Below, in pieces: positions 28,086 to 61,225 of a stretch of 64,000 nt of DNA (the first letter of the stretch is position 1; the number at the start of each line of letters is the position of its first letter). The notes below the pieces were generated by a model. That model made no database searches. It worked only from the letters and a program-made list of their open reading frames with translations, and was not told the DNA's origin. A program made the position numbers and the translations under genes. Location: NCBI GenBank assembly GCA_051294905.1, contig CM119383.1, positions 21,142,001 through 21,206,000 on the forward strand, in the 5' to 3' direction. Source of the DNA: Botryllus schlosseri (taxonomy: Eukaryota).

Positions 28086-28089
28086 GTGA

Positions 28090-28110
28090 AGTATTTGGTT
28101 GTTATAAGGT
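28090..28110 (+). other. 5'-truncated SL-like exon with GT donor
   Basis: AGTATTTGGTTGTTATAAG|GTTCGC, identical to 49882-49906. Followed by gtaagtactaacggcttgtttcag (TACTAAC plus acceptor). Confidence 0.7.
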
Positions 28111-28629
28111 TCGCGTAAGTACTAACGGCTTGTTTCAGATTTAAAGACCCGTCGATTGAGCCGCTGCGGCCATTGTAGCTAAACTACCGTAAAACTTATT
28201 TATATTGTACCGTACTACTGCCGTACCTAGGATAGAACCTCTTCTTAGGCTACTTCTACTTTACCTCTTTTCTCTCTCTTTGCCGGCGACGAACTTCGAG
28301 TCTCCTTTAGACTCAACTCTCTTCAGGTCTTGACTCTCCCTCTCGAATCAAGACTTGTCGAGCTCTCCCTCTCCTAGTCTTGGCTCTCTCTCTCGAGTCA
28401 AGTCTAGGAGAGTCTGACTTTACTCTCGCGCCTCTCTCTGGAGACGTCGAGAGAGTGCCTTCTTAACCTCGAGTGAACTCGCCTGACGTCAGCCGTCTGG
28501 CGAGTATCGTTCGAGCTTACCGTGCCTCTTGAGCGCGCAGCCTACGCCCATCGAGACGTTGGTATCGATTTCGCGAGCGTTTGGAAACGCCTTGCTTTGC
28601 GTTCGATAGCTAGACAGAAAGACAGTAAG

Positions 28630-29925
28630 ATGGCTTACGCAAACGCATTAACAGGACAGGGAAATCATCAAATTACATACGGGAATAGGCCTAGATCATT
28701 GGACATAACAACACCACTTGACTGCCAGACAACAGAAGTGATAGATGCCATCATCACTCACCCTGCACTCAAGGAATACAGTGAACCCATCGCTTCTATC
28801 TTCCAAATCGGCAGAACAACGTTCAACCAATCTTTTCACACACACCCACAGACAGAGACGATTCGCGAAGAGTTCGTCGAGAAAACAATCACGGGAATCA
28901 ACCTCGCAAACGGTACGATGTACGTTAGAAAGCCCAGGCCACCGGCGGCACAAGTCAACATCAGAGCCGTGCCAACGGAGGTGGAAGAACGCGAAATCAG
29001 AAACAAAATCGCACAATACAACTGCGGCACGGTCCGCGATATCAAACTGATATATCACAGGGGCACTAACCTACAAAATGGGTACAGGCAAATCAGTATT
29101 GAAGATTACATACCGGGAAGACTCCCGTCTTTTATTTACCTAGGGCAAGCACCCTGCAAAGTATATACACCTAACGACGAAGGAAACGAGACGTGTTTGA
29201 AGTGCCTGCAGAGAGGACACACGGCAAGTCAATGTCCAAACACAACAGTGTGCTTCCTTTGCAAACAAACAGGGCATCGTCGACACGAGTGTCCAAACAA
29301 AAAAGAACAACAAACAGCTACAAACCAGAGGAGAATACTGAAGGTTGATGAACACATTACACAAACAGACATGGAAGTTATAGATGAACCTGAGCCTGAA
29401 CAAAACAACGAAGAACAAAGCCCAGCTTCTGCATCAAGCGAGGCAGAGGCTGAGGAGATAGAGAATGAGGAAACAGAAGAAGAGGAAGAGAATGAGGAAA
29501 CAGAAGAAGAGGAAGAAAAAGATGACAATGAAGGAGGAGAGGAAGAACCATTAGTAGACCTCTTTAACCTACACGAAAACTCACAAACACCAAGTGAACT
29601 CGACGAAACGATCAGACCAGGATCACAACAAGAAAGTGTAGCCGGAGATCTACAGATAGACACAAGTGAAGACGAAAACCAAACACAATTAGATAATGGC
29701 CAAGGCAGCAAAAAGCCAAAACACCTTTTAAACAAAGACCGAAAGAGCCAAACGACGATCCTTCGACAAAGGTTCGAGAGGAGCCATTTTACGGAACAGG
29801 AATTCTTCAGTGCAGCACAACACTCACCAAACAAAAGAGGCGTTGAAACACGTAGTCCAACCTTGCCAACGTCGAGCAAAAGCAGACGTAAGCTGGCAAA
29901 GCCCGATACGGACGACGAAAAATAG
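28630..29925 (+). CDS. LINE A ORF1 (gag-like, two zinc knuckles, acidic tail)
   Basis: CLKCLQRGHTASQC and CFLCKQTGHRRHEC; open frame. Confidence 0.85.
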   Translation: MAYANALTGQGNHQITYGNRPRSLDITTPLDCQTTEVIDAIITHPALKEYSEPIASIFQIGRTTFNQSFHTHPQTETIREEFVEKTITGINLANGTMYVRKPRPPAAQVNIRAVPTEVEEREIRNKIAQYNCGTVRDIKLIYHRGTNLQNGYRQISIEDYIPGRLPSFIYLGQAPCKVYTPNDEGNETCLKCLQRGHTASQCPNTTVCFLCKQTGHRRHECPNKKEQQTATNQRRILKVDEHITQTDMEVIDEPEPEQNNEEQSPASASSEAEAEEIENEETEEEEENEETEEEEEKDDNEGGEEEPLVDLFNLHENSQTPSELDETIRPGSQQESVAGDLQIDTSEDENQTQLDNGQGSKKPKHLLNKDRKSQTTILRQRFERSHFTEQEFFSAAQHSPNKRGVETRSPTLPTSSKSRRKLAKPDTDDEK

Positions 29926-29962
29926 AAAACCGAAATAGCAACCCAGCCCTCTCCGCTATTCA

Positions 29963-32349
29963 ATGGCTTTCGATATTATCTCTCTAAACATAAATGGACT
30001 TAAAATGTTTCTTGAAAAACAACAGAAGATGCAACATCCTCTGTATCCAGGAAACTCATAGGGGGGATAAAAAAAGAATTCACAAATGGGCCCAACAAAA
30101 TGATTGGATATACTTTCCGAACCACATCGACAATGGACAGCACTGGACAGACAGAATAGGAAATAAGAAACATTACTATCAAGGAACCACGATATTCGTG
30201 AAGAAGGAATTAGAAATCAACAATACCATAGACAACACCATTATAATAGAAGACAGAATACAAATGATAAAAATAACCAACAAAGAAGACGACCAGCCGA
30301 AACACATATACAATGTATATGGGCCGCCTGATGTGGGGAGGAATCAAACGGACGTCTTCAAGATACTAACACAGCGCATCGAACCCCACGCAGACAGCGC
30401 CATAATTTGCGGCGATTTTAATATAATAACTTTAATATAATAACTAACAGTCTGGACTCAAAAAACAACAGAAATTTTCAGCTCACCCCAGCGGCGAAGA
30501 TCTGGAAAGTATTCATAGAAACATATAAATTAAGAGACGTGTGGAGATGGAGGAATCCAAATAAAAAACTCTTCTCGAATTGAAGGTTTTGATTACGGAG
30601 TAGAGTCGACAGAATTTACATAGCAGAGAGATATCTCAGCCATGTGCAAACCTGCACATATAACATCGATACACTAGCGGATCACGTGTACCTTCAAAAA
30701 CTCAAACTGAGGGAACCCCAACACCAGCACTGGGGCAATGGCTATTGGAAGAACGACGTTAGATACTACACTGATGAAAACCTACAGAAACAGATTATTG
30801 ATTTACACAAAGAATGTACAGAAGAAAGACCACACTTCGAGACAATATACGAATGGTGGGATCACTTCAAAAAAAGAGCAAAAAACATCTACAGCTCTAT
30901 GCACGCCAAAAAAGAAAGGCGGAAATAAACAAGGAAAGCAAACTACGTGACGAAATATCACGCTTACAAAGGGACAGCAACAACGTCTCAGACGTAACAA
31001 ACAAGATCAAAAAGCTGAAGCAGATGGAGGAGGACAAAATCCTCCACCAATGCCGGCTGAGCAAGGTCAAAGATATTGAAGAAGGCGAAAAGCCAACTAA
31101 ATATTTTTACCAGAAACTCAAACAAAGGAAGGAGAGTAAAATAATTACAACTGTAGAGAACTCCTCCGGAAAGGAGACCACAAGCAGTACGGAGACTCTG
31201 CATGAAATAGAATTATTTTACCAAAAGCTGTGGGCAAAAACACAACGAGAAGATCACCGTGTACAAAAAGTTTACCTAAGTGCGATTGAAGGCGTTCATA
31301 TCACACAGGAGGAAACAGAGGACCTGAACACAAAGATCCAAACCACGGAACTAAAAAACGCCCTTTTCGGCATGGACGGAAATAAAACTCCAGGCTCTGA
31401 CGGCCTATCAAAGGAATTTTATACGTGCTTTTGGAACATAATAAAAAATGATCTATTAGAATTAACCAACAACACATTCACCTTCGGAGGCCTTTGCGAA
31501 ACCTGGAAAACCGGAATTACGATTATGATATATAAAAAAGGGCACCCGAAACACCTGAAGAACTGGCGACCCATTACTCTACTAAACACTGATTATTTGC
31601 CAATATGGACGTTATAGCAACGCTCAAAAATTTAGAACAACCAACGGAATTTTGGCACAAACACGCCATCTACCTGACTGGAACCAAAATGAAATCCATC
31701 AACCCAAAATTATATAATAACAGCGAACCGCACTTATATCCCATCCCAAAAGACTGGAAGGATATTTTAAAGCTCGCGGAAAACTTGAAATGGGACGATG
31801 AAGAATGGAAAGACTCATAAAACTATATATCTATCGGTCAAAAACTCCAAAGAAATTAGACCAGAAATCAAGACTCGGAGACGGATATATATTCGGGAAC
31901 AAAAAATGGGACAGAAACCTGCGTTTCGACAATCACAACAGGCCCCTGGACCTGAATTGTAAATTTTGCGATTCGACCAACGATAACGTAGCCCACATTT
32001 TTTGGGATTGCAAATTCATAAAGAAAACAATCGAAGAACTCGAAACTGCGTTAAAAACTAAACTCCATGAAGATGCTATACTCTACAATGAAAACACAAA
32101 AAAAAAACAGACTGGCTACTAATATGAAAACACAAAAAAAAAACAGACTGGCTACTAATATCAATTATGAAAAAGGGAATAATTAAACACAAAATCGCAC
32201 TAGACGTCGAGAACGTAAAAGTCGGAAAAGAAAATTTGACCAGGAAAACACTGGGGAGGACCAAAATGAGAATCGAGACCCAGCCAGCAACTCTGCTCCA
32301 GGCCGAAGCTATATCAAAAATAGAGCAATATCTGATAAACCTCACATAA
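29963..32349 (+). pseudogene. LINE A ORF2 remnant (APE endonuclease, start of RT, C-terminal zinc finger)
   Basis: MAFDIISLNINGL start, several frameshifts and stops, deletion junction near 31598. Confidence 0.85.
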
Positions 32350-32552
32350 TGCAATCTTTAAACAATAAACAACGACAGCTTTGGGTTCCAAACGAAAGTT
32401 TGGTAAATCCGACAACGATTGACAGGGAAAAAGCGGGAAAAAGCCCTGCTGGGAAGGAGGGAGGGGCCGTTCAAAAACCCCCAGACCACGCGCCACCGCC
32501 GGGAAGCTTTTAACACGCAAACGCAAATATACAACATCACACAACTCCAACC

Positions 32553-32578
32553 ATTGGAGTAGTTGGTTGTACTAAGGT
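32553..32578 (+). other. Full-length SL-like exon with GT donor; degenerate tandem copy at 32606-32629 lacks the donor
   Basis: ccATTGGAGTAGTTGGTTGTACTAAG|GTAC, nearly identical to 46620-46591 on the minus strand. Confidence 0.7.
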
Positions 32579-33193
32579 ACATGAACAACAACCACGCAGC
32601 CAACCATTGAAGTAGCTGATTGCACTAAGATACATGAACAATATGTTCAAAAAATAAGAGCAAACAAATAAGAAGAAACCGTTAAATTAAGTTCACAAAC
32701 CGTTAAACTCCTAAGTTAGGAAATACAAATAATATAAAAATATACAAAAAATGTGTAATAAAGACCCCGGCGGGAGGTAGCCCTATTCTTAGAGAGGGGC
32801 TGCCAAACGCCGGTGGATACGGAGAGCCGTAAAAAAAAAAGTGGAAGGAGCTCCACGTTAGTTAGATTCAGGGTAAGGGTAGGAGCTAGATACAAGTTAG
32901 ATAGGACGCTGGTTATGGCGAAAGACAGGTGCTGCGGAATGGCTGGCGGCCTTCTGGGGGACTTGCCCCCCTGACTCTGGCTGGGGCAATATTTTCGCGC
33001 ATCGCGCGGACGAATTTTTCGCTTGTGCGCGGCTTTCATTGAAAACGCGCCAAGGGGGTGGGGGGTGATAGCGCGATTCGTTTGCGCAACATCTCGGTCA
33101 ATAGCCGGTACCTTCTTCGAATCTGGGTTTCCTCTTGAATCATTGGTCTAGTACCGTTCTTCATTTCCTCATCGTAATTTTCAGAAACAAACG

Positions 33194-33825
33194 ATGGAAA
33201 TAATTTCTAGCTGTTTTGACGAGTGCATCGACTTTACGATATATATTGCTTCAAGACTTGTGTCTGCAAGACTTATAATGAAAGAGGGATTCATCGCCCG
33301 TGCCATTGCCGACAACGATGTCGTGGCAAAAACGACCCCGCCTGGCCGCCTCACCTTTGTCGTGATGCCTGAGGATCCATTTTATAGACATGTTCGTTTG
33401 CCGTTGGGGTTGGCACCGATGCCGAACGATTTTCATTCGGCACGGAGCAAGAATGTCAGCATTGAAGGAGGGCACGTCTTCGTGACGACCCATTTCAACG
33501 GACGCTCAACAATCGCTGGCATTATGATCGAACGTAACTACAAGGCAAAAATGCTCCTCTTTTATGACGAGATGATGGCGATTGACCGCTCGGGATTGCT
33601 ATACTGTGTGACTTTGGTCGTCGATCGCTCGGAGAATGCCGACGTCGTAAGACCGACGGTCCGCAGCGGTCGACCACCAGTATTCCTGCAGGTCAATCAC
33701 GTAACGCAGGCGTTACCGGCAGCGCCATCTGCCCCAGTCATCCGCACCCTGGTCGGCGCGCCGCGGCCTTCGCGGCGGCAAGGCCGCGGCGCGCCATCCG
33801 TGCCCCGGTCCGCATGGACCTTTGA
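33194..33825 (+). CDS. Family B protein, extreme C-terminus frameshifted by a fold-back insertion
   Basis: Colinear paralog. An alternative frame at 33773-33825 reads AARPRRAIRAPVRMDL*. Confidence 0.8.
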
Positions 33826-35079
33826 TTTGATCTACAGTTTTTCGTTTATCTGTCTTTGATCTACAGTTTTTCGTTTATCTGTCTAACAGTTTCGTTTTAA
33901 CCGTCCTCATGAAGTTTTGTCATGTCGCTTATTTTATGCTATTTTCCGCCACTTTTAGTATTAGTAACTTAAGTTAATTGAATTGTGTTTTGGCCACCTT
34001 TGCTACTATCGTGTTTTATTGCTGAGTGTGTCGTTCTTATTTTTTGTTGACCACTTGTGTCTAGTATTCATATTTTATTTTATTGACAGTAAATTTATAT
34101 CTCCGCTTTTATCGTATTTTTATAAATCGCAATATTTCTTTTTTAGATCGTAATATCATAGCGTTAGTGTAAATGTGTTCTGAAACACTAGTTAGCTACT
34201 GATATGCGCGTTGGATACAATTGGACGGAAAGAGCTCGGTGTCAGTGTGTCGGAACAGTTTAACGGTGTCAAGCAAGGGTTGGAGTGAGGACGACTATGC
34301 GTGAGTGAAGTACTGTGTAACAGTACGTATAATTCAGTCTGCATGGCGTCGTTCGACCACGTCGTGCTTTCTGAAGCTTTATGTACTACTGTTACATACT
34401 ATAGCTTTATGTACTACTGTTACATACTATCACAATACTATTACAAAGTAGTTGTGTAGGAAGTGTTTGTGCTAGCGAGGTCATGCAACAGTGTGTTGTC
34501 AGGCTTGCATGTGCTGTTCGAGTTGTGCGTGCAAGGTTTTGCATAACACTGCTGCGTGACATGGGTATCGTTGTCAGGAAACTGGCTGTTATGTGTCATT
34601 ATGTAAACTTGAAAGTGCGGGACCTTGTTACCCAAGTTCATGTTACTTGAAGTGAACATAGTGTTACAAAACTTCGTAATAATCGTCGGACGTAGTCGAA
34701 TTAAAGTTGCGCATCATGCGATCATTTACGTTGTATTTGTATCATTCATGGGGTGATATTTGTATCATTCATGGGGTGAGGGGTGGTAGCGCGATTTGTT
34801 TTCGCGCAACCTCTCGGCTAATATCCGGATTAGTTCAGTCAGTTTTTAGAAGTCAGGGTGGACGAGTTTACGTTATTACAGTTGAAGGTGAGACTATATC
34901 TGCGTCTGTCGTTTGATGTCGCGTAACAGCGACCCGGGCTTCATTTTTCGGGTTATAGCATATATAGGTTCGCGTCCGGGTGCCCCTGTTTTATGTGGTC
35001 TGCATACATAATTGATTTAAAGTTTCTCGTCACATACTTCAATCCGCTAATTTAGTTATCAGAACATAAAAATAATATC

Positions 35080-36178
35080 ATGTCACTTGACATAATCGGA
35101 TACGCTAGTAAGGTCGATGTTGACTTGACAATTGGCAGACGTAAAGTGGAAGCGACGTTGATCCTACGGAGTGGTCTTTATGGACGAGGGGTCATAAGAT
35201 GTGACTATGAACGAGTGATCGGGCATGGGCCATCTGTGCATTTTATGACTCGCCCGCTGAACCCGTTTCATAACAATGTGCCAGTGCCGGAGGGACTAGC
35301 CAGAGTATTTCAGCACGTCAAATATGGGTTTCGCACAGTGTTGTCGTCACACACCTCGGATGGTGTGTTCTTTGCCACTCATTATGAAGGTCGCTGCACG
35401 TTGGCGGGCCTTATAATCCACGACCAATTTCAATGTGAGCTGCTCGTTTTCGACGACGTTTACATAGGACGGTCGCCAGCGGGCACCCCCACAAACTTGC
35501 CGATGGCGGTCGAAAGTCCGCCATACGACAACGTCGTGCCCGAAATGGAGTTGGACTCGGCATCGGTACGTCACACTGACATATCGCCGACATCTGGATC
35601 AACTGAGACGTCGTCAAGTGATGTATCGATGCCTTCAGTTTCAACTCCGGAATCCGCTGGCACCGTCGTGAAACGAGAGATGAAGAGGAAGCAATTTCCC
35701 CGAGTACACCTGTCGTATCGATGCCTTCGGTATCAACTGCGGAATCCGCTGGCACCTTTGTGAAAAGAGAAATGGAAGAGGAAGCAATTTCCCTGAGTAC
35801 ACCTGTCGTATCGATGCCTTCGGTATCAACTGCGGAATCCGCTGGCACCTTTGTGAAAAGAGAAATGGAAGAGGAAGCAATTTCCCCGAGTACACCTGTC
35901 GTATCGATGCCTTCGGTATCAACTGCGGAATCCGCTGGCACCTTTGTGAAAAGAGAAATGGAAGAGGAAGCAATTTCCCCGAGTACACCTGTCGTATCGA
36001 TGCCTTCGGTATCAACTGCGGAATCCGCTGGCACCTTTGTGAAAAGAGAAATGGAAGAGGAAGCAATTTCCCCGAGTACACCTGTCGTACCGAATATTGT
36101 CGTAATGAATCCTGTCGTACCGAATTCTGTCACTCCTCCCAAAAGGGTTATCAAAAAGCCTCAAAGACTCGATCTGTA
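35080..36178 (+). pseudogene. Divergent family B protein with a 31-aa repeat tail; one 1-nt deletion separates head from tail
   Basis: Head aligns with family B (THYEGRCTLAGLII...VESPPYD). The tail frame ends PPKRVIKKPQRLDL*. Confidence 0.7.
35623..36086 (+). repeat. 93-bp coding tandem repeat, 5 copies
   Basis: gtatcgatgcc at 35623, 35715, 35808, 35901 and 35994 (first unit 92 bp). Confidence 0.9.
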
Positions 36179-36919
36179 GTGTTGGTAGTAATTTTCCATA
36201 TCGTTTCGTTATTGACGCTCTCTTTTATGTTCTGCTTTTAAGCTCCGGACATGCATTTTTACTGCTTTTATACCCCATGTCATTTTAGTACTGCTTTCTC
36301 AATTTCTTTCAATCATGTATTTTACATGCACAATCTCTATTATTCAGATAATATTAAAATAGCATTAGTGATAAGTATTATGAAGCAATAGTGATTCAAT
36401 CAATGTGGTCGAAGAGAGAAATCGGGATAAAGCTTGTGGTGTTACTTTATTGGAATAGATCAATGACGTCGATGAAGTGAGGATGAATCGGCATTGAAAA
36501 AGGTCATGTGTAACACCATTAATACTTCATGTTTCATGGCGTTGTTAGGTTAGCTTTATGTTTTGTGAAGTGTGAGGTAGTGTTACATAATGTCACATTT
36601 ATCATATAAAATAGTTGTTTCAAAGTTTTTGTGCTTGCAATGTCAGAGTGCAGCTTATTGCGTGTCTTGTACTTGCTTTGTTTACGTCGGCGTATGAGGT
36701 GTAACATTATACTGTTTCATTGTTTCGTTTTAACTGCAAGAACGAATGTTTCACTATTTGAACTTTAGAAAGCATGCGGTTGTTTCACAAATAGATGTTG
36801 TTTCAAGTTTACATAGCGTTGCATAATATCACGAGCGTTAAAGAGTGACTTATATGCAGTATCACACCTCTTATTTTCATTTACGATATTATTTGCAGAT
36901 ACTCGTGCTTAACATTACA

Positions 36920-37609
36920 ATGGCTAGCTCTATGACTAAGAATGACGACGGCAATGTTACTGTTAGTGTGGAACGTGATGTGTCTGATTCATGTCAGATG
37001 TCGCAAGATGCTGTCGTTATTCAGACAGAGATGGCGTCTCTATCGCTTATCTCGAGAAGCTCTGGAAGTGATTCCAATCACGTATCGGTTGCTTCGGAAA
37101 CATCCGGAATTTATCCACTCTCTTCATCGACCGTTTCGGGAAGCTCACAAGCCGACCCCATACCTGTTCCTGATCGAGCCAATCCTGGATGCTACCTACT
37201 AGTACCAATGAACCTGTACAAGGAAGGACGTAGGTCTTTGGTCGGTCCTGAAGAATTTCTTGCTTGGTGTAAAGAAGAAGAAGCAAAGGGTAACTCTGAA
37301 GTGGAGATGATCCAGCAATTTACGATCAATAGGTCGGATGGCGACGAAGGAAGGTCGAATAGCGTGGCAATACATATCATTCGAGAGGTCTGGAAAGGCC
37401 GACTTGTCAAGTTTACCAGACCAGAAAGGTTTCCTGCTCAATAGGAGAAGGTCGAGGGTGAAGGTGATCTTTTTGATGGGTCGGCACAAGTCAGTCATGA
37501 ATTTCCAACGGATCGCAATGGAGGAAACCTCTCCGAGGAGGTCAAACAGACGAAGCAGAAATAACAAGAGGGCGAATCCGCGAAGTTAGCGGAGTCTGCT
37601 GAACAATGA
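36920..37609 (+). pseudogene. Family C pseudogene
   Basis: PVPDRANPGCYLLVPMNLYKEGRRSLVGPEEFLAW matches 38037. Premature TAG at 37442; the 3' end and downstream DNA are duplicated at 38290-38620. Confidence 0.75.
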
Positions 37610-38036
37610 TTGCTACCTACAGAGCTTGCAAATCTCTTTTGTCGGAATGAACTCAAACGTTACTTGTGCTTTCTTTTGCCTCGAATTCGTGTCGATCGAT
37701 ACGCATTTGTTTTAGGTATCGCATCATTTCTGAATACGTTATTGCTGTACTGTGGTTCGTGACATGGGTTTCGTTGGCGAGGGACTAGCTGGTATGTGTC
37801 ACTATGTAATCTTCAAACTGGATGACCTTGTTACCCAAGTTCATGTTACTTGAAGCGAACATAGTGTTGCAGAACATCGTAATAATCGTCGGTCGCATTC
37901 CAATTAAAGATGCGCATCATGCGATCATCTACGTTATATTTGTACCTTTAAGCTTTTATCGTGTATTTATAAATTGCAATGTTTCATTTTAGATCGTAAT
38001 ACTTGTATTTGTCTACACTACTGCTATATCATTATA

Positions 38037-38477
38037 ATGACTATGTCGAAGCCAAAGGCCGGCGATGGCTATTTCGAACAGACTGTATATCAATTTGACG
38101 CGTCGCAACATCCTGACCTTGTTAAGTTGGAGACGAAGACTTTACCGATTTCTGCCGATTCTGATCCTGGACCTGATCCGGTTCCTGACCCAGACGATCC
38201 AAATGCTTATCTACTGATACCAGCCGACCTGAACCGCGAAGGTCGTAAAACGCTGATAAGTCCTGAGCAGTATATGGCTTGGTATGAAGAAAGGTTTCCT
38301 GGTCAACAGGAGAAGGTCCAGAATGAAGGTGATCTTTTCGAAGGGTCACCGGTACAAGTCTGTCCGGAATTTCTGAAGGATGGCAATGGAGGAAACCTCT
38401 CCGAGGAGGTCAAAGAGACGACGCAGAAAAAACAAGAGGGCGAATCCGCGAAGTTAACGGAGTCTGCTGAACAATGA
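38037..38477 (+). CDS. Orphan family C protein (acidic, Pro-rich, ~146 aa)
   Basis: Open ORF; near-identical core to 63664 (DPNAYLLIPADLNREGRKTLISPEQYMAWYEERFPGQQEK). Confidence 0.7.
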   Translation: MTMSKPKAGDGYFEQTVYQFDASQHPDLVKLETKTLPISADSDPGPDPVPDPDDPNAYLLIPADLNREGRKTLISPEQYMAWYEERFPGQQEKVQNEGDLFEGSPVQVCPEFLKDGNGGNLSEEVKETTQKKQEGESAKLTESAEQ

Positions 38478-38722
38478 TTGCTACCTACAGAACTTACAAA
38501 TCTCTTTAGTCGGAATGACCTCAAACGTTACTTGTGCTTTCTTTTGCCTCCAATTCGTGTCGATCGATACGCATTTGTTTTAGGTATCGGAGTATTTCTG
38601 AATACGTTATTGCTCTACTGTGGTTCGTGAGCGAACTATTTGGGACAATATCTTATTCGTGTTACTATCGTGTCTTATTGTATTTGTTTTCCAGATAATA
38701 CAATACGAGTCTAATAGCTAAA

Positions 38723-40059: not shown

Positions 40060-40209
40060 ACTGACGTGTTCGATATTTCGTTGCGTTTTTCTGATTTGTC
40101 AAACCTTAACTTTCATTTTCTTTTTCGTTTGTGATGCCTTCGTAACTTTCTCGTTTCTTTTTACAGATTAATAATTGTATAACTAGCTGTTACTCCACTG
40201 AAATACGAT

Positions 40210-40902
40210 ATGAGCAAGCAATCGAAGACATCGTCAAGCCGTCTGCTGTTGTCTGCAGATGACGTTTCACAAGCGAATAGGATCGTTGCCGACCTGCGCA
40301 ATGTATTTCCTGACCATTACTTATTGCGATTCAATTGTCGTCCCACCAATGTTCACCATCAATTGCTCATGTTGGCTCTATACCGAGAGATGACCCGCCA
40401 TCAAGTATTCGTTACCATGATTACTGAATCGTTACGACCTGCGGTAATATTGCCGCAGGATGCGTTGAGTGCCAGCCGTAGTTCTCAAACGTTAACAGCG
40501 TCACTACCGACTGATCTGAATGCTTTTCTACATCGATCCGCTTCTCCGGAGCTTCCAGTATCTTCGGACCTTTCTGTACAAGTGCAGACATCTCCTAAAG
40601 CGGAACGACATTCGTCACCTAATGACCTGCTCAAGGCTCAAGAGCACGATGATGTAGCAACGGTTTCAGTTATGCCACGGAAACGTGTTAAAGTCGAGAG
40701 AAGTTGTCAAACGGAAACTGATATCAGTGGGATGTCCCCGTGTGCATCGAGCGAATCGAGTGAGTCGGATGCATCGGACGAACCGTCTCTGCCGTGTGCA
40801 ATTGACGATTCCACCAGTCAGTCAGCGGCTGTATGCGAACAGCAGAAGCGGACCGCCACTAATGAAGCAGGAAATCAAAAGAAAAAAAGAAAAAATCTGT
40901 GA
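40210..40902 (+). CDS. Hypothetical protein: helical N-terminus, Ser/acidic middle, basic C-terminus
   Basis: 230-aa ORF preceded by a tttttacag acceptor, same architecture as neighbouring cargo genes. No homology recognised. Confidence 0.5.
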   Translation: MSKQSKTSSSRLLLSADDVSQANRIVADLRNVFPDHYLLRFNCRPTNVHHQLLMLALYREMTRHQVFVTMITESLRPAVILPQDALSASRSSQTLTASLPTDLNAFLHRSASPELPVSSDLSVQVQTSPKAERHSSPNDLLKAQEHDDVATVSVMPRKRVKVERSCQTETDISGMSPCASSESSESDASDEPSLPCAIDDSTSQSAAVCEQQKRTATNEAGNQKKKRKNL

Positions 40903-41240
40903 CCTGTGACATGTAACATTTTAAAGTTGCGATGCATTGCTCGTCGATATTGTCATCTCTAACTTTCGTTTTATGTTCATTATCGTGTGTTACGTTCGTT
41001 ATTTCGTTCGGCTGGCTTGCCGCTTTTTGCTTTTTAATGTACCTTCGCTATGCTTTAGCTGATTTCATTTCTTTATTGTCGCACCGATTTATGTGTGTTA
41101 TATCACCTGCAACGTTCGTTACTTGATGTCTTCGTTCAGTACAGATTGATAACTGTAAATACTCGTGTCTTTTGCGAGTACTAACAGTTTCACGCTATTC
41201 TTTATTTTCCAGATAATACAATAACAGTCTGATAGCTAAA

Positions 41241-42467
41241 ATGTCGTATAGAACTCCGACGAAGAGCCCTTTCGGATAGGAAAGGAGGAAGAATCCTGAT
41301 TTCTCTGTCGATTGGTAATCAGCATTTCCCGAAAGATTACCTGAGGTCTTACGGTCGGTCTGTGATTCCGGAAGACGTATCCGACGAGTCTATCAACAGT
41401 AAATTGCAGACCTTTAGCTGCGAATGGTTAATAAGGCCGGCAGTTGCAGTGTCCGAGTTTGCCGAAACGCTACTTCGAAATCGTAACACCACGCCTGCCT
41501 TCGAGGATATCATGGATCCGAGAGCTTACCAACAGTTCCACGCGCATCTCAATTCCGTCGTCAACGAGGTCGGTCCTCTGTGGATAAGCCCAGCGAACCC
41601 GGCTAGCGAGGCGACTCTTACTAAAGAAGACGTGTCGGCGAGGTTCGAACGCCTTGAAAGTCTGATGATTCAGCAAAAGTCGTCGTTCCTGGATCGATAT
41701 ATCGATGTCATGATCGATTGCGGACACGCCATGTGTGTGAGTGCGCTCCATCTCAAAATGATGTCGTTTTTGATGCGCAACAAAGACGCATGGGCCCTCA
41801 AATTTAGATCCCATCCCGACCACGAGGACTTTAAAAAGAACCCGACCCCTCGCACTTACGCTGAAATTGTCTTTACTGGCTACATCATCAAGAAAGGCTT
41901 CAATGCAGCGCCGATCGAGACCCGGCTAGAAGACGCATTTCCGATTTCATGCTCGACGGTCCATCATCCCCGTCTGTGTCGGTGCGAGTCGTTCCAGATG
42001 TTCGATCTCCTGTTTCGGCTCAAGTTCCGCCAGCTCCCGTTCTGTCTCAAACACAGGCACCAGTTCGTGTACAAGAGCATGGTGTCGCCTATCCTGTCGT
42101 GCAGATACCTGTTCCTGTTCAGGTCACGCATCATTCACAATCCCCTCTTTCTTCCGTACAGTTGGCATCGGTTCCGGTTACTCGTCCTGTACAGAATGCT
42201 GCTCGAATGGTTCCGACACTGGATCGATCGGATACCGAGCTGTATGTACCTGCTAGTCAAACCGTCAGGGAAGCTGCTCCTTTGTCGACTAATCAATCGG
42301 TCTCGTCAACATCTGTTCCAAGTGCTGCATCTGATGAGGAGAACGTAGCATGTTCCAGTGGTAAAGTGCAAAGTAAGTCCGCATGTGTCGGCGAATCGAA
42401 GAAGCGAAGCAAAGTTGACAAGGCGGGAAAGCAAAAGAAGAAGAAGAAACATATAATTCTGGAGTGA
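41241..42467 (+). pseudogene. Family A pseudogene (copy A5), recent paralog of A4
   Basis: Very similar DNA to 38690-39430; TAG at codon 13, small indels. Confidence 0.85.
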
Positions 42468-42852
42468 TGTCGTACGCATATCGTATTGTTGCATTTGTGG
42501 ACTCAGTTTCGAGCCGTAAATTTCCCTACCTTCCATACTCATGTCGTGTGTTACGTTTAGTAATTCTTTTAGGTTTATTACTGAAATGCTTCGCTGAACG
42601 CCCGTTACTTTTTCGTTGTAGTAGGCTACTCGATTTAAACAGCTTTTCCTTCATAACGTATTTTGTCATAATGTAAATATTGCTTCAATTTGTTTCGTTC
42701 TTTTTCCAGTTGCTAGTAACAGTTGCTGTGGCATGATACAAGTCGGACTCGAATGACGTGGTTTTGACTCGAAAACGCAAGTTAAGTGGCCCTGGAAAGG
42801 GCCGATGGTTTTATCAAGAAGGAAACGCTGCACAATATTGCAGATTCCATGT

Positions 42853-45800
42853 TTAAGTTCCCTCTGCTGGCTTGAAATGGCTGTTTCTCGGTGGAATGAG
42901 AAAACGAAGGTTGTCGCGTCGACGAACGCGGGAAATTGCAACGTACGCACATCCAGCACTCAATCTTGGACGATCGAACCATACGATTACCTTATTGAGT
43001 GTTTGGCCTTGGACCTTGTGAATGGTTGTGGCGTAGGCCAAGTCAATTGGGTAGTAAGTCCCTTCTGGCGACGTAATTGGATACACGCGGATCAAGTGAC
43101 CGCTGGAGATCTTCAGAAGTATCGTGTGCCCGACGACGGCATGAATCAAACCGCACTGGCCGTTGACATACCCCCTGCGTTTTTGCCGATTTTCAGTAAT
43201 CACAACACGCATTCCGAAATAGACAGGTTGCAAGTTCGATTCAGCTGTCGGATACCTAACTTGAAGAAGCGGTAACGAGCGCGCGAAGATCTTATTTCGT
43301 ACAGCCAAGTTGTATTGCCGCGATGTTTGACGGGTAAAGGTCAAAACCTTGAAGTCAGCGTGTTTGTCATAGCGTGTTTGTCATATATTGCTACAAGAGC
43401 CTCGTCCGAAAAATCGGGCGTGTCTTGCAACACCAATCCCTCAGCGAATCGCGATTACGATTCTGCCGACGGTCGCTGAAGCCGACATTCATTCAAAAAG
43501 GTAGAGAGGACCACATCCGTTGTACGAAACTGTTGCAATAGGGTGGTCTTGTCGCATTTGCTCAATATACCGCGATGAGAAAAAAGACTACCGATTACGC
43601 CGTCAACGGGAACTGGCTGTAATTGCCATTTGTCCCCGCATAGAACGACGACCGATCGATCAGATATGAATGAGAGGGTCGTCGATATATGATCGCCGTG
43701 GGTGAGCGATATCAACGATATCTCGTCGATCAGGATCAAGTCATACTGTCGCAGCTGCCAGTTCATTCGGGATTCCGAGCCCTCGCCTACACGCAATCCG
43801 AAAGCCGCGTGAACCGTATCTGTACTTAGTTGGTTTCCGAATGCAGTCTTGTACGTTGTAGCCAAAAGACCGGTCGGTGCCAACAACAAGACTCTGCATG
43901 CCATAGCCAAACCCGGACGGATGATTTCTTTGATACAAATAGATTTTCCGGTGCCTGGAGATCCAACGAGTAGATGGTACCGATCATGACCATCGTCATT
44001 TTCGTCCAGTATTGCGGGATCCATTCGTCTGTGCAGTCGATGGACGACGCAGTTGACGAAAGCGGCTTGCATGGGTGATAAAGTCGTTGCCGGAGCAACA
44101 ACGAGATCCGTTACATTCAATTCATCGAAGGTGAATGTTCCTTCGTAATGCTCATTCCAGACCTGGAATAAGCTCACCACATAAGACCACAACGTAAATA
44201 TATAGTTACTCCGACATGCTTTCTGTTGGCAGACTAATGTAATGGAATTCCTGTCCTGCCAAAAGCTTGCCCTGTTATGGACAGCAAAAGAAAACATCTT
44301 GATGTCTGCAGGTAACGTGTCAAAAAGAGGATGAACTAATTCCGAAAGCTTGCGGAAGGCCACATTCATTAGCGCGTCTTGGAAAAAATAAGTGTTGTTG
44401 AATAGGTCAACAAACTTGACTCCAAGCAGTAGCGGTTTAGTAGCGCGTCGGGGATGAGATTGACAGCGAGCCACCGTGAAATTTCGGAGGAATTCGAACA
44501 GCGTCATACGCTCGGCACTAGGCATCCTGTTGCAATAGGCTTTGACGATGTCATTTGTCTGCGCGCGCTCAAAAGTGGGAACTAAGAATCTTTTCGTGTC
44601 AGAGCATGTGTACGCCATCTTTACATCGCTCAAAAGCGCTATCATTTCCGGCTCTGCGGGAGCCAAATTGCGTAGATATCGGTAGGCAACGCTTTGTGCC
44701 GACAGGTCGGAAAACAGCACCTCACGCGGAACGTTATGTTCCCGAAATTTAGATACGTATGATGCAACATACTTCAACAACATGGTCTGGCCGTCCGTCA
44801 TCTGAACATCCATTGAACACCTCAAGGCCTGTGTTAGTGAAGGGATGTAAACCCGCAAATTAACAGAATGGGCGCGTTCCGAACGTTTCAGCAACAACAC
44901 TTGCGATCCAGAAATAAAGTCGATGACGCTCGGTTGTTCGCGCACCTCTAAACCTCTTACGGGCTGTCTGCTTTTCTGCGTATTGTATACTATATCGCAA
45001 AACTCCGCGTCGCGTTCTGGAAAATCTGCGCAAAATTGTCCTATATCTACTTTTGCGGGATCCCACAACCAGGCTAGATAATGCACGTGCAAGGTGCCGC
45101 GTTGCTGAAATTCATACCTATAAAAGTATGTTTTTACGTTGCACCCCGGCGAGTTGGCATCACGCAATACGTTTTGGCGCCAGTCTCTCTTGCCCCGGCC
45201 TGACACGAAATGCCGCATGACTTCTGTCAGTACATGTGCGATATGTAATGTCTCCAGAGCTGCTAAATCCGTGGGTCCTTTAGCAAGAGCGTCCATTCTA
45301 TTGGCGATCACGTCGGAAGAAGGAAAAGTCCACTCGTAAGGGCTTACTGTAATAAATACGTCTGGAAATCCGTACTGACGCACGGCATCCACGATAAAAC
45401 TTAACTGCCACTCCCAGTATGTTGGGGAGAACGTTTTGGAATCTAAAGCTCTCGCCGGAGAGCAGTCAAGTGCCCGAGCGGTAGATATCGCACCCGATAT
45501 GGTTTTATAGAGCCAGCGATCGAATTGAAAACGAAGCAGCGGGAAGCATGCCGAGAAATCTAAAACTCCCGACAAAATTTTCAAGAGGTGCGACTTCTTT
45601 GCGCTTTTCCGGTCCCCGGAATCGGTTATGGAAGTCTCGCACATCAACAAATGGATAAAGAATAGGCCAAATGGCGGTTTCAACAAATTTGAAACTGAAC
45701 AGCTGGTCGCAGTTCAGCGTTCTAGGCAGCTCGCTGTTATCGTGCTGTCTAATAAGCTGGCCATACGCACTCTCTGGAGAGGCACACAAAAATTCATGAG

Positions 45801-46250
45801 CTCTTTCTAGACGTTGCCGACGTACGTCGCACGACACAGCAGCAATGCTAGATTCCACGGAATGACTACGAATGGTTGCGTAAACCGCACCGTCCTTTGA
45901 TCTATAACCGTGTTGCCTTATGGCGTTCGATCCGTAATGCAGTTTGTAAATCGAAAGGACTGTCATGTCGTTAAAAGTCAAGCCGCGTATTGATTCGGGC
46001 CAACTTTCAAGCACAGGCACCGAGTAATTCGCATTACTGCAAGCGCACTTACCGGCCGGCAAAAACCTTCCTCGTAAGGCAGCTTCGGACAGCCCCCTGG
46101 TATATGCTGATCCACAACGTTGGCATTCGATCCACGCGCCAGTCGAAATCCAGGCAGCCAGCTTTACTCCTGCTTCAATATTAACGTCGGCTTCCTGCCG
46201 AGGCGGTATTACGATGTCTCCAAAATCGTTCCAATGCCGCTCATTCTGGC
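42853..46250 (-). pseudogene. Second Helitron-type Rep-helicase, decayed
   Basis: EFQQRGTLHVHY, YVASYVSK, GSPGTGKS, ILIDEISL and TIHKVQGQTL. Frameshift at ~45642, in-frame TAA at 43455 and a 14-nt duplication at ~43357-43384. Confidence 0.9.
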
Positions 46251-46592
46251 AGTGGATAGAGATACAGTAGGATAGTAACTTGTAGGTAACCAACTCAGCT
46301 GCTCACTCAACGCACCAACAAATCCAACTGATCGAAATTCAGTAATTCTGGGTACTCATGATCTAACGCGGCAAAACGGAAACGAGAGATCCCAGTTAGT
46401 CATAAGCTTACGCGCCACAACAGAAACGAGAGATGCTTGGTATGAATTACGCGGCAACCATATCGCGTGAACAAAACTTGATTTCATGTCACACCGACTC
46501 GCCTCATTTGCATAACGCGAGAACAAAACAAACTTGATTTCATGTCACAACGACTCGCCTCATCTGCATATCGCGTGAACGAAACTTGCCGT

Positions 46593-46618
46593 ACCTTATT
46601 ACAACCAAATACTCCAAT
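46593..46618 (-). other. Full-length SL-like exon with GT donor upstream of Rep-helicase 2
   Basis: Minus strand reads ccATTGGAGTATTTGGTTGTAATAAG|GTAC. GC-box (ggggcggggg) and cacgtca lie upstream on the same strand. Confidence 0.75.
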
Positions 46619-47519
46619 GGCTATCGCCGCAGAAAGAGGCAATATTTTCATTTGTGGTGCAAACGCTGCCCATCCGTCGCGAGCGGTTGATCCGTTTTTG
46701 TTGGGCCTCCCCCGCCCCTCCTACCCTGACGTGATTTTTCTCACTTTTTGCTTATAGGTTTTTGTTGGGTTGGCCAAACTTTCGTTTGGAACCCAACTTT
46801 ACGAGTTCTTGTGAATTATTCTTCTTTTTTTGTTCTTGTGAATTATTCTTCTTTTTTTTAAAGAACCTTTGATATGAATATTACGGTAGAGTCGACCAGA
46901 TCGTTACTTGGCGTCAAATACAACAGATCAGATCGCGATCATGTCGGATATGGAACAATATTTTCCTTCGCCTAAGTTCGCGACTTACGTCAAACCTTAT
47001 TCTTCAACCCTAAAACTTGTTGCCTTGCCAAGTCACTCTATTGTTTACTGCACATGACACATTCCCTCACTAAATGCGACCAATTAGGACGAACCAAAAT
47101 GGTCTGGACTCGACTGCGAATCGCAGGAGTCGAATACCTATCAGACGCTGTTTCTGCTGAATATCATCTGTCGACTTGTATCTATTGAGCAAAGAGCCGT
47201 GAATCGGTGCGGTGCATTTTTATTAAAAGCCAAATAAACCCAAACAATAATGACAAACAACAACGTTTCGAACACATCAATTTGTATGCACATTTCACAC
47301 AGACGAGCTTCGTCTAATCGCCAGCGTCTTTTCTCGCCTGATTTCGATACGAACAACTTGCAGGTCATATAGCTTCGTGCAAAAGCGATATGGTCTACGA
47401 AGTCATACTTATTGATTCACTTGTGCGTTGACAGAAGGCAAAATACTTCGACGGAGGAGCGGATAACGTCTGAAGTGTGCAAATCAGGTGTGACGTGCTG
47501 ACGTAGATAGTATCGACAA

Positions 47520-49790
47520 TAGGGCAAAATTCAGCGCAGCATAGTTCAAAGTACACCCATACGACGCCGAATTTTTCCATATTGAATCACGTATTTGTCA
47601 TTGTATGATCGTCGAGTTCAGCGCGATGAATAGCGATAGACCAGGACTCTAGGAGAAGCGTATCGTGTCTTATGCGTATACTGAACGATGCGATCGACCG
47701 GAATGTCTGCCATGGGATGTAGTTCGACGATTGGGTGCCACAAACAGACATCCCATGCACCTCGGGCGGGCTGGGAGCGGTTGTGACGTCATAATGAGTA
47801 AAATCCGTTATTACATGTCACTATTATGGTAACTCCAGTGTTAGATCTACTTATACGAGTTTCATAGACGTGTCTCTTTCTTGTGGACACAAATATTATA
47901 TAACTTTTCTGACACCCTATAGTTCCAGACATGGTAGACATTTCATTTTGGTGTCATTGGAAAGGTGACAAAAAAGTCTCCAAACGTATTTTTTTTTGAG
48001 TCGCTACTTCAAGTACTTTTCGAGTAGTGGCTTTGTAAAGTAGTTTCAATGTAGTTTCAACGTTTTTAGTGCTATCGACTTCATTTTTGTATCGTTGAAT
48101 ACTCGTCGCAAGACCAGTCTTCAGTCAAAGTATCAAGTAGATTCGTCAAGTAGTTTTGGAGTAGTGGCCGTGTAAAGTCGTAGTTTCAATGTATTTTCAA
48201 CTTCGTGAGTGCTGTCGACTTCATTTTTGTATCGTACATTACTTGTTGCAAGACCAATCTCCAGTCCAAGTATCAAGTAGATTCGTCAAGTACTTTTCGA
48301 GTAGTGGCCGTGTAAATTAGTAGTTTCAATGTACTTTCAACGTCGTGAGTGCTATCCACTTCATTTTTGCATCGTTTAAAACTTGTCGCAAGCCGAATGT
48401 TCAGTCCAAGTATCAAGTAATTTTGTCAAGTAACAAACATCTTATAGTCTTTTTAATGTTTCAGCAATGTTTTTGGCCATGTTTTGGTGGCTGTAGAGAG
48501 TTGATTTTCTCAATTCTGAATGCTCTCGTCAAGACCTATCTTCAGTACAAATTTCAAGTGGATTGGACCACGTGGAAAGAAGTTATGAATTTCGCGTTTT
48601 TGACCATGTTTCTGTGGTGCTCGAGAGTTGATTTTCTCAATTCTGAATGCTCTCGTCAAGACCTATCTTCAGTACAAATTTCAAGTGGATTGGACCACGT
48701 GGAAAAAAGTTACGAATTTCGCGTTTTTGACCATGTTCCCGTGGTGCTAGAGAGTTGATTTTCTCAATTCTGAATGCTCTCGTCAAGAGCTATCTTCAGT
48801 AAAAATTTCAAGTGGATCGGACCACATGGAGAAAAGTTATACCAAAATATCGTTTTTACCATGTTTTGGTGGTCCTACAGACTTGATATTTTCACTTCTG
48901 CAAGCTCTCGTCAAGAGCTATCTTCAGTAAAGATTTCAAGTGGATCGGACCACGTCGAGAAAAGTTATACGAAAATATCGCTTTAGACCATGTTCTGGTG
49001 ATCCTAGAGACTTGATTTTTTCAATTATAAATGCTCTTGTCAAAACCTATCTTCAGTAAAAATTTCAAGTGGATTGGACAAGTAATAAAAAAGTTATAGT
49101 ATTTCTAATGTTTTTCGAAGCTATTTAACCATGTTCTGTGGGTCCTAGCGACTTGATTTTTTTTCTGGAAAGGGCGGGAAAAGGCGATTAATCAATGTGA
49201 ATTTCAAGTCAATCCGAGCACGAAATCTAATTATTTTCAGGAGCCCTCATTTTCGAAAAACCATGTTCTGGTGGCATTAGAGAGTTAATTTTTATTTTTC
49301 TGGAAAGAGCTCCGAAAGGCGATTAATCTATGTAAATTTCAAATAAATCGGCCAACGTTTACTATTTTTCCAAGTACGAAATGTGTTCGAAAAAAAAACT
49401 TGAATGTTTTCTGTGATCTCCTTTACTTTTTACAGTATCGCCTCGGGAAAGGTGGCGTTCGAAAGATGTGTGTAAGAAGAATCCAGACGTTTTGGAATTA
49501 TCACGATAGCTATCACGGCCTCCAAATGACAGCCATTTCAAAATGACTGTTTTTCCGGACGAAAAAGTCGAGTTTTTTTTTCCCAAAAAATCTGAAATTT
49601 TCGCCCCCCCCCCCCAGCCGAAGTTTGGAGTGTCTAGGACCAACTCCAGCCATTCTAGCCATTCTACCATGCTACAGCATAGGCCCTGGACCTATGTGTA
49701 CCCCGGTCGTTTTCGAGTTACAGTAGGTCAGTGACCCACCGAAAGTAACCGCGAGTGAACCGTTCCAGAACTTTCTCGGAATTTCGCGCA
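47520..49790. repeat. Module non-coding block, copy 2 (about 5 units of the 127-bp satellite)
   Basis: Colinear with 25720-28085 and 58040-61180. Confidence 0.85.
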
Positions 49791-49852
49791 CTTTCGAAAT
49801 CCGCGGGAATGTGAGTATATAAGGCGGCGCTCCGGCCGGTTCGATTTCATTC
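49762..49852 (+). promoter_or_regulatory. Heat-shock-element array + TATA box + initiator
   Basis: gTTCc aGAAc tTTCt cGGAa tTTCg cGCAc tTTCg (49762-49796), TATATAAG at 49816, TCATTC at 49847 with canonical spacing. Confidence 0.65.
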
Positions 49853-49875
49853 TGATTTGACTGTTGAAGTGGAAG

Positions 49876-49902
49876 GATTGGAGTATTTGGTTGTTATAAG
49901 GT
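49876..49902 (+). other. Full-length SL-like exon with GT donor
   Basis: GATTGGAGTATTTGGTTGTTATAAG|GTTCGC; second partial copy GAGTGTTTGGTTGTTATAAG|GC at 50180-50201. Confidence 0.75.
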
Positions 49903-50739
49903 TCGCATCTCGTCGAGGCAGGTGTCTTTTAGCTTGTTTTTCCAGATTAAAATACGCTAGTTGTGGTTTGCCGCTGTGGCAACGCTGTTTTAAAATATAA
50001 CAGTAGACAGGACGTGATTTTTATAGACCTAAAATTTTTTTTTTTTGATGGTACGTCTTCCATAGGTTCCCTTTTAACACCGGAGGTAAAATACAGAACC
50101 GTGACTTAATCACGGTTCTGATAAACCTATTGGCGTATTTGGTGGAAAAGAGACTGCTATTTAGCAGATAAAATAAGCAGAGTGTTTGGTTGTTATAAGG
50201 CTATATAGAGTACGCCTACATAAGGCTATATAGAGTACGCCTACAACCAACGAACGAACGAAGAATAAAGCTGCAACGACGACAACGACCGCCGACCGCT
50301 GCAACCTGCCGCCGACCGCCGACCATCGCCGATCGCTGCCAGCTGCCGCCGACCGTCGACTGCCGACCGCTGCCAGCTGCCGCCGACCGCCGACCACCGC
50401 CGACCGCCGCCAGCTGCTGCCTGCCGCCGACCGCCGCCAGCTGCTACCTGCCGCCGACCGCTGCCAGAACGCCGCCGACCGCCGCCAGCTACTACCTGCC
50501 GCCGACAGACCGCTGCCAGAACGCCGCCGACCACCGCTCTCGACCTCCTCCGCAGGCTACTATACATACCTTAAGAAGCCTAAGAATAAAGACTAAAAAA
50601 GAGGACAAGACCTCCTCTAACGCGGCGAACATCCTGCGGACAAGAACTCCGCAGGACACACCGTTCACGCTCCTGCGGAATAAACACCCGCACGGAAACA
50701 ATGGCCACCGCGAACCTCTACACACATCGGCCATGATCT

Positions 50740-51789: not shown

Positions 51790-52035
51790 AAGGATTGTCA
51801 AATATACCCCCAGGAGACGAGGCCTTCCAAATCCAGATTTTCAAACATGTAGAACAAAGTCCTTTACCAGCAGAACAAAGAATAAAAGACAGCCCGAGGA
51901 TAAAAAGAGTATATCATAGCAGCCCTGAGGAAAAAAGCGACAAAAATAAAAAAAATAAAGAAAATAAACGTCAAAACACTCGAAGAACAAAAGAAGGAAA
52001 GCAAATGGAAAACCCTATTATCTTTTATCGTTCAA

Positions 52036-54687: not shown

Positions 54688-54689
54688 AA

Positions 54690-61185: not shown

Positions 61186-61225
61186 GCGTGACATCCTGTT
61201 CGTTTTCGTCTTTTCAGATATCATT

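Follow-up and report, generated by a model that had tools for sequence, protein, structure and literature searches.

Spliced-leader copies in a Botryllus schlosseri locus: possible footprints of leader-headed RNA copied by LINE reverse transcriptase

How does a host spliced leader (SL) come to stand, several times over, inside mobile-element DNA? The question is raised by a 64,000-nt stretch of Botryllus schlosseri DNA (assembly GCA_051294905.1, contig CM119383.1, positions 21,142,001 to 21,206,000 of the forward strand), hereafter the window, whose first letter is position 1 of all coordinates given below. What is known of SL trans-splicing in tunicates comes mainly from Ciona and Oikopleura, and for chordates there is, to our knowledge, essentially no account of how mobile elements deal with the process or turn it to their advantage. 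Our tentative answer, held with slightly more doubt than belief, is that the recurrent motif in this window is the host SL written into DNA rather than a series of SL RNA genes. With the same reserve, a little short of an even judgement, we propose that the copies are footprints of SL-headed RNAs that were copied into DNA by the reverse transcriptase (RT) of long interspersed nuclear elements (LINEs). They lie at the 5′ end of an element, LINE2, that is defined by a target-site duplication, at the truncated 5′ end of a related element, LINE1, and at an older 5′ end buried in LINE2; the remaining sites are two junctions at which the 3′ end of a further element, LINE-X, meets SL nucleotide 1.

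A pattern search for the 24-nt motif with one or two mismatches returned three copies in the window, where none is expected by chance (no match in 100 dinucleotide shuffles). They are located at 32553-32576 (plus strand, two mismatches, tail TACTAAG), 46618-46595 (minus strand, one mismatch against the published SL, tail TAATAAG) and 49877-49900 (plus strand, two mismatches, tail TTATAAG). A looser scan, which tolerated up to 7 mismatches of 25 and yielded 0-2 matches in shuffles, added a partial SL comprising positions 6-24 at the 5′-truncated end of LINE1 (28090-28108, plus strand, tail TTATAAG) and a decayed tandem duplicate of the 32553 SL (32606-32629, plus strand). A broken SL lies inside the 5′ untranslated region (5′-UTR) of LINE2 (50129-50199, plus strand), where positions 1-17 (50129-50145) and positions 6-24 (50181-50199) are separated by 35 nt. 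In total the window holds seven copies or pieces, three near-exact and four partial or degenerate, and a gap-tolerant scan of it revealed no additional copy above noise. The original prediction had reported the recurrence, which both scans confirmed, and had missed the piece at 50129-50145. The bases that it gave after the motif read alike here: GTTC at 28109 and 49901 (GTTCGC in both), GTAC at 32577 and 46594 (GTACGG in the latter), AT at 32630 and GC at 50200. The stolidobranch leader that it gave also agreed with the published list, in which the SL of seven stolidobranch ascidians is (G)ATTGGAGTATTTGGTTGTATTAAG, given for Botryllus, Halocynthia, Boltenia, Polyandrocarpa and Styela, with one difference in Herdmania (PMC3795323). 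Every difference between the window copies and this published leader falls at position 10 or at positions 19-20. The 64 kb contain no N letters and no identifiable host gene.

The copy at 49877 stands at the very start of LINE2 (49877..57133, plus strand), a dead copy of an L1-like retrotransposon without long terminal repeats whose open reading frame (ORF) 2 is in four pieces. Pfam matches placed ORF1 with its CCHC knuckle at 50740-51789, an N-terminal apurinic/apyrimidinic (AP) endonuclease of the Exo_endo_phos family at 52036-53052 (with a PDB match to the L1 endonuclease), the RT at 53147-54687 and a C-terminal knuckle at 55030-55929, all on the plus strand, and the 3′ end was read from the sequence as an A10 tail (57124-57133, plus strand). 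The closest solved structures are those of human LINE-1 ORF2p (PDB 8sxt and 8c8j), with E=3e-30 for the RT and E of about 1e-10 for the endonuclease. A protein search with LINE2 ORF1 and an exact-protein look-up for further copies of the elements gave no match. Directly before the leader stands GTGGAAGG(A) (49869..49877, plus strand), the 5′ copy of a target-site duplication whose final A overlaps SL nucleotide 1. The 9-mer GTGGAAGGA occurs at only two sites in the 64 kb, before the LINE2 SL and right after the LINE1 A10 tail (32841), and because it is found at those two junctions only we recognize it as the target-site duplication. It follows that the SL corresponds to the first 24 nt of the retrotransposed LINE2 RNA; with a target-site duplication and poly(A) as its limits and an SL at its 5′ boundary, LINE2 has the structure expected of a retro-copied RNA with a relict SL. 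At the other end, the LINE2 3′ flank, GTGGAC CTCCACGTTAGTTAGATT (57134..57157, plus strand), is the same site as the LINE1 3′ flank. The 18-mer CTCCACGTTAGTTAGATT is found only at 32851 and 57140 in the window, and BLAST paired 32831-32868 with 57124-57157. That A10+GTGGA...GATT is a LINE-internal 3′ tail is unlikely, as GTGGAAGGA also stands directly before the LINE2 SL and nowhere else. A TATATAA box (49816..49822, plus strand) is found 61 nt upstream of SL nucleotide 1, outside the target-site duplication, and therefore belongs to the target and not to LINE2.

LINE1 (28088..32840, plus strand) belongs to the same lineage as LINE2 but to a second family, and its RT has an internal deletion. 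Its ORF1 (28522-29925, plus strand) is 36% identical to that of LINE2, the end of its ORF2 was mapped to 32346 and its A10 tail occupies 32831-32840. The two elements are colinear by tblastx and have in common the tail motif GTGTAATAAA followed by A10. The LINE1 3′ flank (32841..32868, plus strand) reads as GTGGAAGGA GCTCCACGTTAGTTAGATT, that is, the uninterrupted target, and both A10 tails run into GTGGA(AGGAG)CTCCACGTTAGTTAGATT. Upstream, both SL-headed LINEs are preceded by a repeat that we call U (47339..49790, plus strand), which contains 127-bp tandem monomers and has further copies at 25612-28087 and 58010-61188 with 72-83% identity in self-BLAST. A three-way alignment placed the end of the U homology at 49790/61188 and, for the copy that ends at 28087, at the equivalent of about 49759. 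LINE1 lacks SL positions 1-5 and about 120 nt of repeat U, a loss that is a normal 5′ truncation with target deletion. The same 3′ junction and the same upstream repeat, in elements whose ORF1 proteins are 36% identical, indicate that two families inserted independently at one nucleotide of a repeated target, as do target-specific LINEs that use an AP endonuclease.

The copies at 32553 and 46618 have a different setting. Over about 175 nt upstream of the leader the two loci are identical at 117 of 172 positions (68%), the SL at 22 of 24 and the GTAC in full, with nothing in common beyond; the sequences downstream of GTAC are unrelated. The upstream part at 46618 is a LINE-X 3′ fragment (46619..46867, minus strand) with C-terminal codons of ORF2 and a short UTR, and it abuts SL nucleotide 1; the relic at 32355..32552 (plus strand) is of the same make-up and homologous to 46796-46619. 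In translation, the frame that precedes 46618 can be aligned with the 45 C-terminal residues of the LINE2 ORF2 region (score 51, reached by 0 of 300 shuffles), and the 32355-32552 segment is likewise similar to the LINE2 ORF2 C-terminus (shuffle p=0.003). In both places LINE-X sequence ends ...CC immediately before SL nucleotide 1. Judged by these alignments, LINE-X is a third LINE lineage of the clade that includes LINE1 and LINE2. ORF2 of LINE1 ends at 32346, and so the element has a 3′ module resembling LINE-X beyond the stop codon of its own ORF2. The 175 nt upstream of the two leaders, which have an AT-rich box near -30, were considered as a promoter; this was rejected, since they are homologous to the C-terminus of LINE ORF2. 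Within them a 23-nt block, TTGGGTTCCAAACGAAAGTTTGG, is identical at 32381-32403 and 46796-46774 (minus strand) amid surroundings that are 68% identical. It can fold into a 6-bp stem with a GAAA loop and is a candidate recognition hairpin for the reverse transcriptase.

If the copies are footprints of reverse-transcribed leaders, every one of them would mark a point at which the RT reached the 5′ end of an SL-headed RNA. The LINE1/LINE2 lineage would insert at a single site, ...GTGGAAGGA^GCTCCACGTTAG... (GTGGAAGGA^GCTCCACG), about 55 nt past the TATA box of a repeated unit. The inserted LINE RNA would have begun with the SL, with SL nucleotides 1-24 as the start of the element and LINE1 falling 5 bases short. 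At least once, the 5′ end of LINE2 would have been extended by a further SL-headed RNA, and the position of the older SL, 252 nt inside LINE2, suggests at least one such extension. The junctions at 32553 and 46618 would record template jumps, in which the enzyme leaves one RNA at its 5′ end and resumes at the 3′ end of a second. The leader itself may have been provided by host trans-splicing of element transcripts; alternatively, the enzyme may have switched templates to an SL RNA that was still unspliced, and the GT would have been kept for that reason. By now, a target-specific LINE lineage of L1-like type would pass on the leader as its own 5′ end.

Several observations weigh against this scheme. 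Of three independent junction types, two have GT directly after the SL (chance about 0.012), which simple retrocopies of trans-spliced mRNAs do not predict. The original prediction had already taken GT as an argument against retrocopies, which is not supported in that form: there are only three independent junctions, one of which has GC, and the GT of the LINE1/LINE2 copies (type 1, as opposed to the type 2 copies at the LINE-X junctions) sits in the poor context GTTCGC. Conservation points the same way. In the 32553/46618 pair the SL and GTAC are identical at 26 of 28 positions versus 117 of 172 upstream (Fisher p=0.004), and in the LINE pair 30 of 31 positions of SL+GTTCGC are identical (93.5% was given for the 31 nt of the 28090 region against 49876-49906) versus a largely unalignable 5′-UTR. 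An SL conserved above its flanks is compatible with selection acting on the leader, or with its being acquired anew time after time. Both LINE1 and LINE2 keep an acceptor-like tract 32-45 nt downstream of the SL, and the 46618 copy heads a complete predicted intron that ends at a conserved Helitron acceptor. Finally, all the evidence comes from one window and from DNA sequence only. The retained GT, the conservation of the SL and the acceptor-like block keep alive both a functional reading of the leader and the idea that LINE-X homes to SLs.

The functional reading, which makes an idea of the original prediction more specific, holds that the elements carry the SL copy as a working first exon, cis-spliced from its GT to an acceptor otherwise served by trans-splicing or, in a variant, that the SL merely makes element mRNA start like a trans-spliced host mRNA. 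Together these two forms are an unlikely but serious contender. Besides the GT kept in both main types and an SL better conserved than its flanks, they can draw on the tandem pair 32553/32606, in which all five differences sit on the second copy, and on the LINE 5′-UTRs, where donor-side and acceptor-like blocks are kept around a variable spacer of 32-45 nt. Beyond the SL these 5′-UTRs are barely alignable between LINE1 and LINE2 and three blocks are kept, namely SL+GTTCGC, the acceptor-like tract GCTTGTTT..CAG/ATT located 32 or 45 nt past the SL, and GCCGCTG(C/T)GGC. The claim of the original prediction that conservation across copy types ends about 4 nt past the donor holds, and it also holds within the 32553/46618 pair; the 28090/49877 pair has three further short blocks in common over about 95 nt. 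The tracts right after the SL end in ..TTTCAG and ..TTCCAG (28109-28138 and 49901-49946), and that of LINE1 is preceded by GTAAGT and TACTAAC, making a full set of splice signals within about 30 nt. This set is too short for an ordinary intron; such a mini-intron would be shorter than the sole real intron seen in the window (54 nt). The splice signals of the LINE copies are weak or too close together, and the type-1 donor, GTTCGC, is itself weak, far from the GTATGT of the 54-nt intron and from the GTAAGT of a canonical SL RNA gene described below.

The leader at 46618 offers a better case for splicing, because a predicted 232-nt intron (46363..46594, minus strand) runs from the donor at 46594 through 60-nt tandem repeats to an AG at 46364-46363, with a branch site TGACTAAC at 46402-46395 followed by a pyrimidine tract. 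It lies upstream of the Rep/helicase frames of a Helitron, Helitron B (42853..46293, minus strand), which has a degenerate N-terminus and matches Pfam Helitron_like_N and AAA_30/PIF1 (43455-45686). Helitron A (568-5917, plus strand, helicase domains in 3635-5917) is colinear with it over 2442-5893 at 42-60% amino-acid identity, and the fusion of a Rep HUH domain to a PIF1-type helicase, as seen in Helitron B, is the mark of a Helitron; in a protein search the best relative was 32% identical. Helitron A has an extra upstream frame of 502 aa (568-2076) that matches nothing in Pfam, and a 54-nt intron (2310-2363, GTATGT ... TTCTAAC ... TAG) which, on its signals, is an example of a real intron in this genome. 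The acceptor tract of the predicted Helitron B intron (46384-46368) is 94% identical to 2189-2204 in the leader acceptor of Helitron A (2189-2206), which follows the upstream reading frame and has no SL nearby, and this too speaks for a leader exon. Splicing in cis from 46594 to 46363 is structurally possible, and on such signals cis-splicing is plausible for the 46618 copy only. That Helitron B is instead a retrocopy of an SL-capped transcript was rejected, as no poly(A) follows the gene and the intron-like segment is retained. As a separate observation, Helitron A contains TTGTTATAAAG 15 nt past its leader acceptor (2207-2232); it resembles the 3′ end of the type-1 SL variant and may be an SL relic, although it is not significant alone.

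Set against a leader exon at these sites, robust Helitron homology near the leader is limited to the 17-nt acceptor tract, and the 206 nt between GTAC and that tract are of no known affiliation. The 32553 copy lies in a LINE 3′-UTR with no gene to serve, and the apparent common promoter of the type-2 copies is LINE coding sequence. All elements that bear SL copies in the window are dead or degenerate. A composite proposal, in which the LINE lineage and the Helitron would encode their own SL exon, transcribed from SL nucleotide 1 and either cis-spliced to the acceptor usually left to host trans-splicing or released as SL RNA, while a sister LINE would home to SLs, is decidedly doubtful.

The second part of that proposal can also stand by itself: LINE-X would insert immediately 5′ of SL sequences, and the leaders at 32553 and 46618 would be targets and not cargo. 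Here the element stops right before SL nucleotide 1 in two contexts, the LINE part is 68% identical, the SL 92% and the downstream sequence unrelated, which is the pattern of a diverged element beside a conserved target, and the same LINE clade is strictly target-specific at another site. Nevertheless, there are two cases only, which could descend from one ancestral junction, and the A-rich stretch after the 32553 SL continues into a LINE-type tail and A10 as a single 3′-UTR would. The window holds no empty or intact SL gene target, and known SL-targeting elements use a restriction-like endonuclease and cut within the exon, whereas the endonuclease seen in the window is of the AP type only. 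We regard insertion at SL targets as improbable.

Are any of the copies SL RNA genes? A reference for a real one was found in a metagenome scan with a 17-mer, which gave more than 120 matches, mostly chance, with the full canonical SL present only in two contigs, L074:1-1453 (Ga0181600_10127346) and L088:1-1471 (Ga0181599_1084197); in a scan of viral contigs for the SL, matches were chance only. In both metagenome contigs the exact published SL is followed by GTAAGT, a short compact GC hairpin and an AU-rich tract, within a 1.33-kb tandem unit that also holds a full-length U2 small nuclear RNA (snRNA) gene in the same orientation (Rfam 165 bits). The unit probably represents ascidian DNA caught in an environmental sample and can serve as a standard of what a genuine SL RNA gene looks like. 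The window copies have the same first 18 nt of the exon and a GT after it, but they differ from the canonical gene in its exact SL, GTAAGT donor, hairpin, AU-rich tract and tandem unit with U2. No copy in the window has the canonical tail, and no tandem SL gene unit was seen in it. The post-SL sequences resemble neither each other across copy types nor the L074 intron to a significant degree, and no intron moiety, Sm-like module or upstream element was found in common between copy types or with the L074 gene. An identity of 10 nt between LINE1 and L074, ATTTATATTG, is within chance, and the post-SL sequence was rejected as a canonical SL RNA intron. A search of the whole window against Rfam, at gathering thresholds and at E<=1, returned no SL RNA, snRNA, 5S or tRNA-like family, and ARAGORN found no tRNA in it, though the LINE2 3′ flank has a GGTTCGAAT-like stretch. 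No SL-gene promoter is seen in the upstream sequences, some of which belong to the target and lie beyond the target-site duplication while the others encode part of LINE ORF2.

The original prediction had placed the copies within mobile-element DNA and held that they were not true SL RNA genes. The LINE context and the lack of a common intron moiety support this, and in view of the missing likeness to the canonical gene and the absence of Rfam matches the second statement stands. Its further suggestion, that the elements make private SL RNAs, finds no support, as the copies have no Sm site or hairpin module in common. An alternative origin, a group of genuine SL RNA genes that has decayed and that transposons later entered and disrupted, might account for several GT-bearing SL copies within 22 kb and for the TATA box 61 nt upstream of the 49877 copy, but is very improbable indeed given that the target-site duplication puts that SL inside LINE2 and the TATA box outside, and that shared gene modules, canonical tails and a tandem unit are all wanting.

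One stretch of LINE2 deserves description in its own right. The 228-nt segment between the terminal and the buried SL (49901..50128, plus strand; folding z-score -2.1, no Rfam match) contains the acceptor-like tract, a GCCGCTGTGGC hairpin, a T12 run (50035-50046) and an 11-bp hairpin (50094-50120). At 50035-50120, AAAA+T12+GATGG and then the 11-bp hairpin, which is perfect, stand just before the buried SL; this arrangement resembles a small RNA with an Sm-like site and a terminal stem, and it matches nothing known.

Returning to footprints of reverse-transcribed leaders, we compared the window with the nearest known systems. Slamovits and Keeling (2008) reportedly described relict SLs in retroposed genes of dinoflagellates, left by recycling of trans-spliced mRNAs. 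As in that case, the SL is fixed here at the 5′ boundary of retro-copied RNA, and older and newer leaders are stacked (two in LINE2). In contrast to it, the leaders are carried not by retrogenes of the host but, in a chordate, by autonomous LINEs and at LINE junctions; two of the three junction types have GT behind the leader, and the older leader is complete but interrupted and not cut at an internal AG. The elements SLACS, CZAR and CRE1 of trypanosomatids and NeSL-1 of C. elegans encode a restriction-like endonuclease, and the site that they cut lies within the SL exon of tandemly arranged, functional SL RNA genes. They resemble the window elements in that LINE sequence lies directly against an SL exon, in belonging to a target-specific clade and in a promoter that the target possibly supplies; here, however, the junction is at SL nucleotide 1, the endonuclease is of the AP type and there is no functional SL gene. 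LINE2 shows no restriction-like endonuclease C-terminal to its RT, and no endonuclease of LINE-X is present in the window.

Reverse transcriptases of LINEs are also known to produce chimeric retrocopies of snRNA and LINE (the U6/L1 type) and to jump end to end between templates. The likeness is that a single insertion with a target-site duplication on either side unites a LINE with a small-RNA-like 5′ unit or with the end of another RNA. A chimera of this sort would account for a LINE 5′ end that bears an SL, its GT and non-coding sequence beyond. The difference is that the chimera would here be heritable and common to two LINE families. The 228-nt segment of LINE2 bears no resemblance to the canonical gene of L074, and its origin from an SL RNA intron is only putative. 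Among target-specific LINEs of the L1/Tx1 type, Tx1L inserts in Tx1D, Keno in U2 genes and Mutsu in 5S genes. The window elements share with them the AP endonuclease and RT, the LINE-1 ORF2p as nearest structures and independent insertions at the same nucleotide of a repeated unit; they are unlike them in that the target is an unannotated repeat upstream of a family of genes for proteins of about 200 aa, and their place in such a clade is putative. We know of no description of SL-headed 5′ ends for L1/Tx1-type clades, and our literature search found neither stolidobranch SL RNA genes nor tunicate transposons with an SL described. The present case thus differs from each nearest known system in carrier, junction position, endonuclease type or GT retention.

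An SL at the exact first nucleotide of a LINE insertion bounded by a target-site duplication would mean, if it is such a footprint, that SL-headed element RNA served as the template of retrotransposition in an ascidian. SLs at element 5′ ends and at LINE-LINE junctions would then provide a genomic marker for template jumps, 5′-end formation and target specificity. Were the leader used instead, be it in initiation, translation or cis-splicing, a transposon would encode the universal mRNA leader of its host, which bears on the origin and spread of SL exons and SL RNA genes; under such a functional reading, transposons would both mimic SL exons and spread them.

Additional features of the window concern the LINE target and other elements. 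Arrays of the 127-bp monomer within repeat U occupy 48469-49100 (5 copies) and 58784-60477 (about 13 copies). Just 3′ of the LINE insertion site, in every copy of the unit, are tandem repeats of 87-93 bp with G-runs (GGGGGGTGGGGGG), located at 20496-21034, 32991-33083 and 57264-57621. Downstream of the LINE target and of these GC-rich repeats sit three paralogous frames of about 200 aa (33194-33859, 21101-21664 and 61226-61843), which are 66% and 39% identical, have no Pfam match and may be an unassigned gene family or part of a larger element. A further LINE within 14975-17352, with an RT (15524-16393) and a zinc knuckle (16777-17352), carries neither an SL nor the common 3′ tail. Other element remains comprise a DUF7041 frame at 8925-9467 and an RNase H frame at 10615-11622 on the minus strand. 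Near the end of the window, a perfect direct duplication of 104 bp is found at 63395-63498 and 63521-63624, with 22 bp between the two copies.

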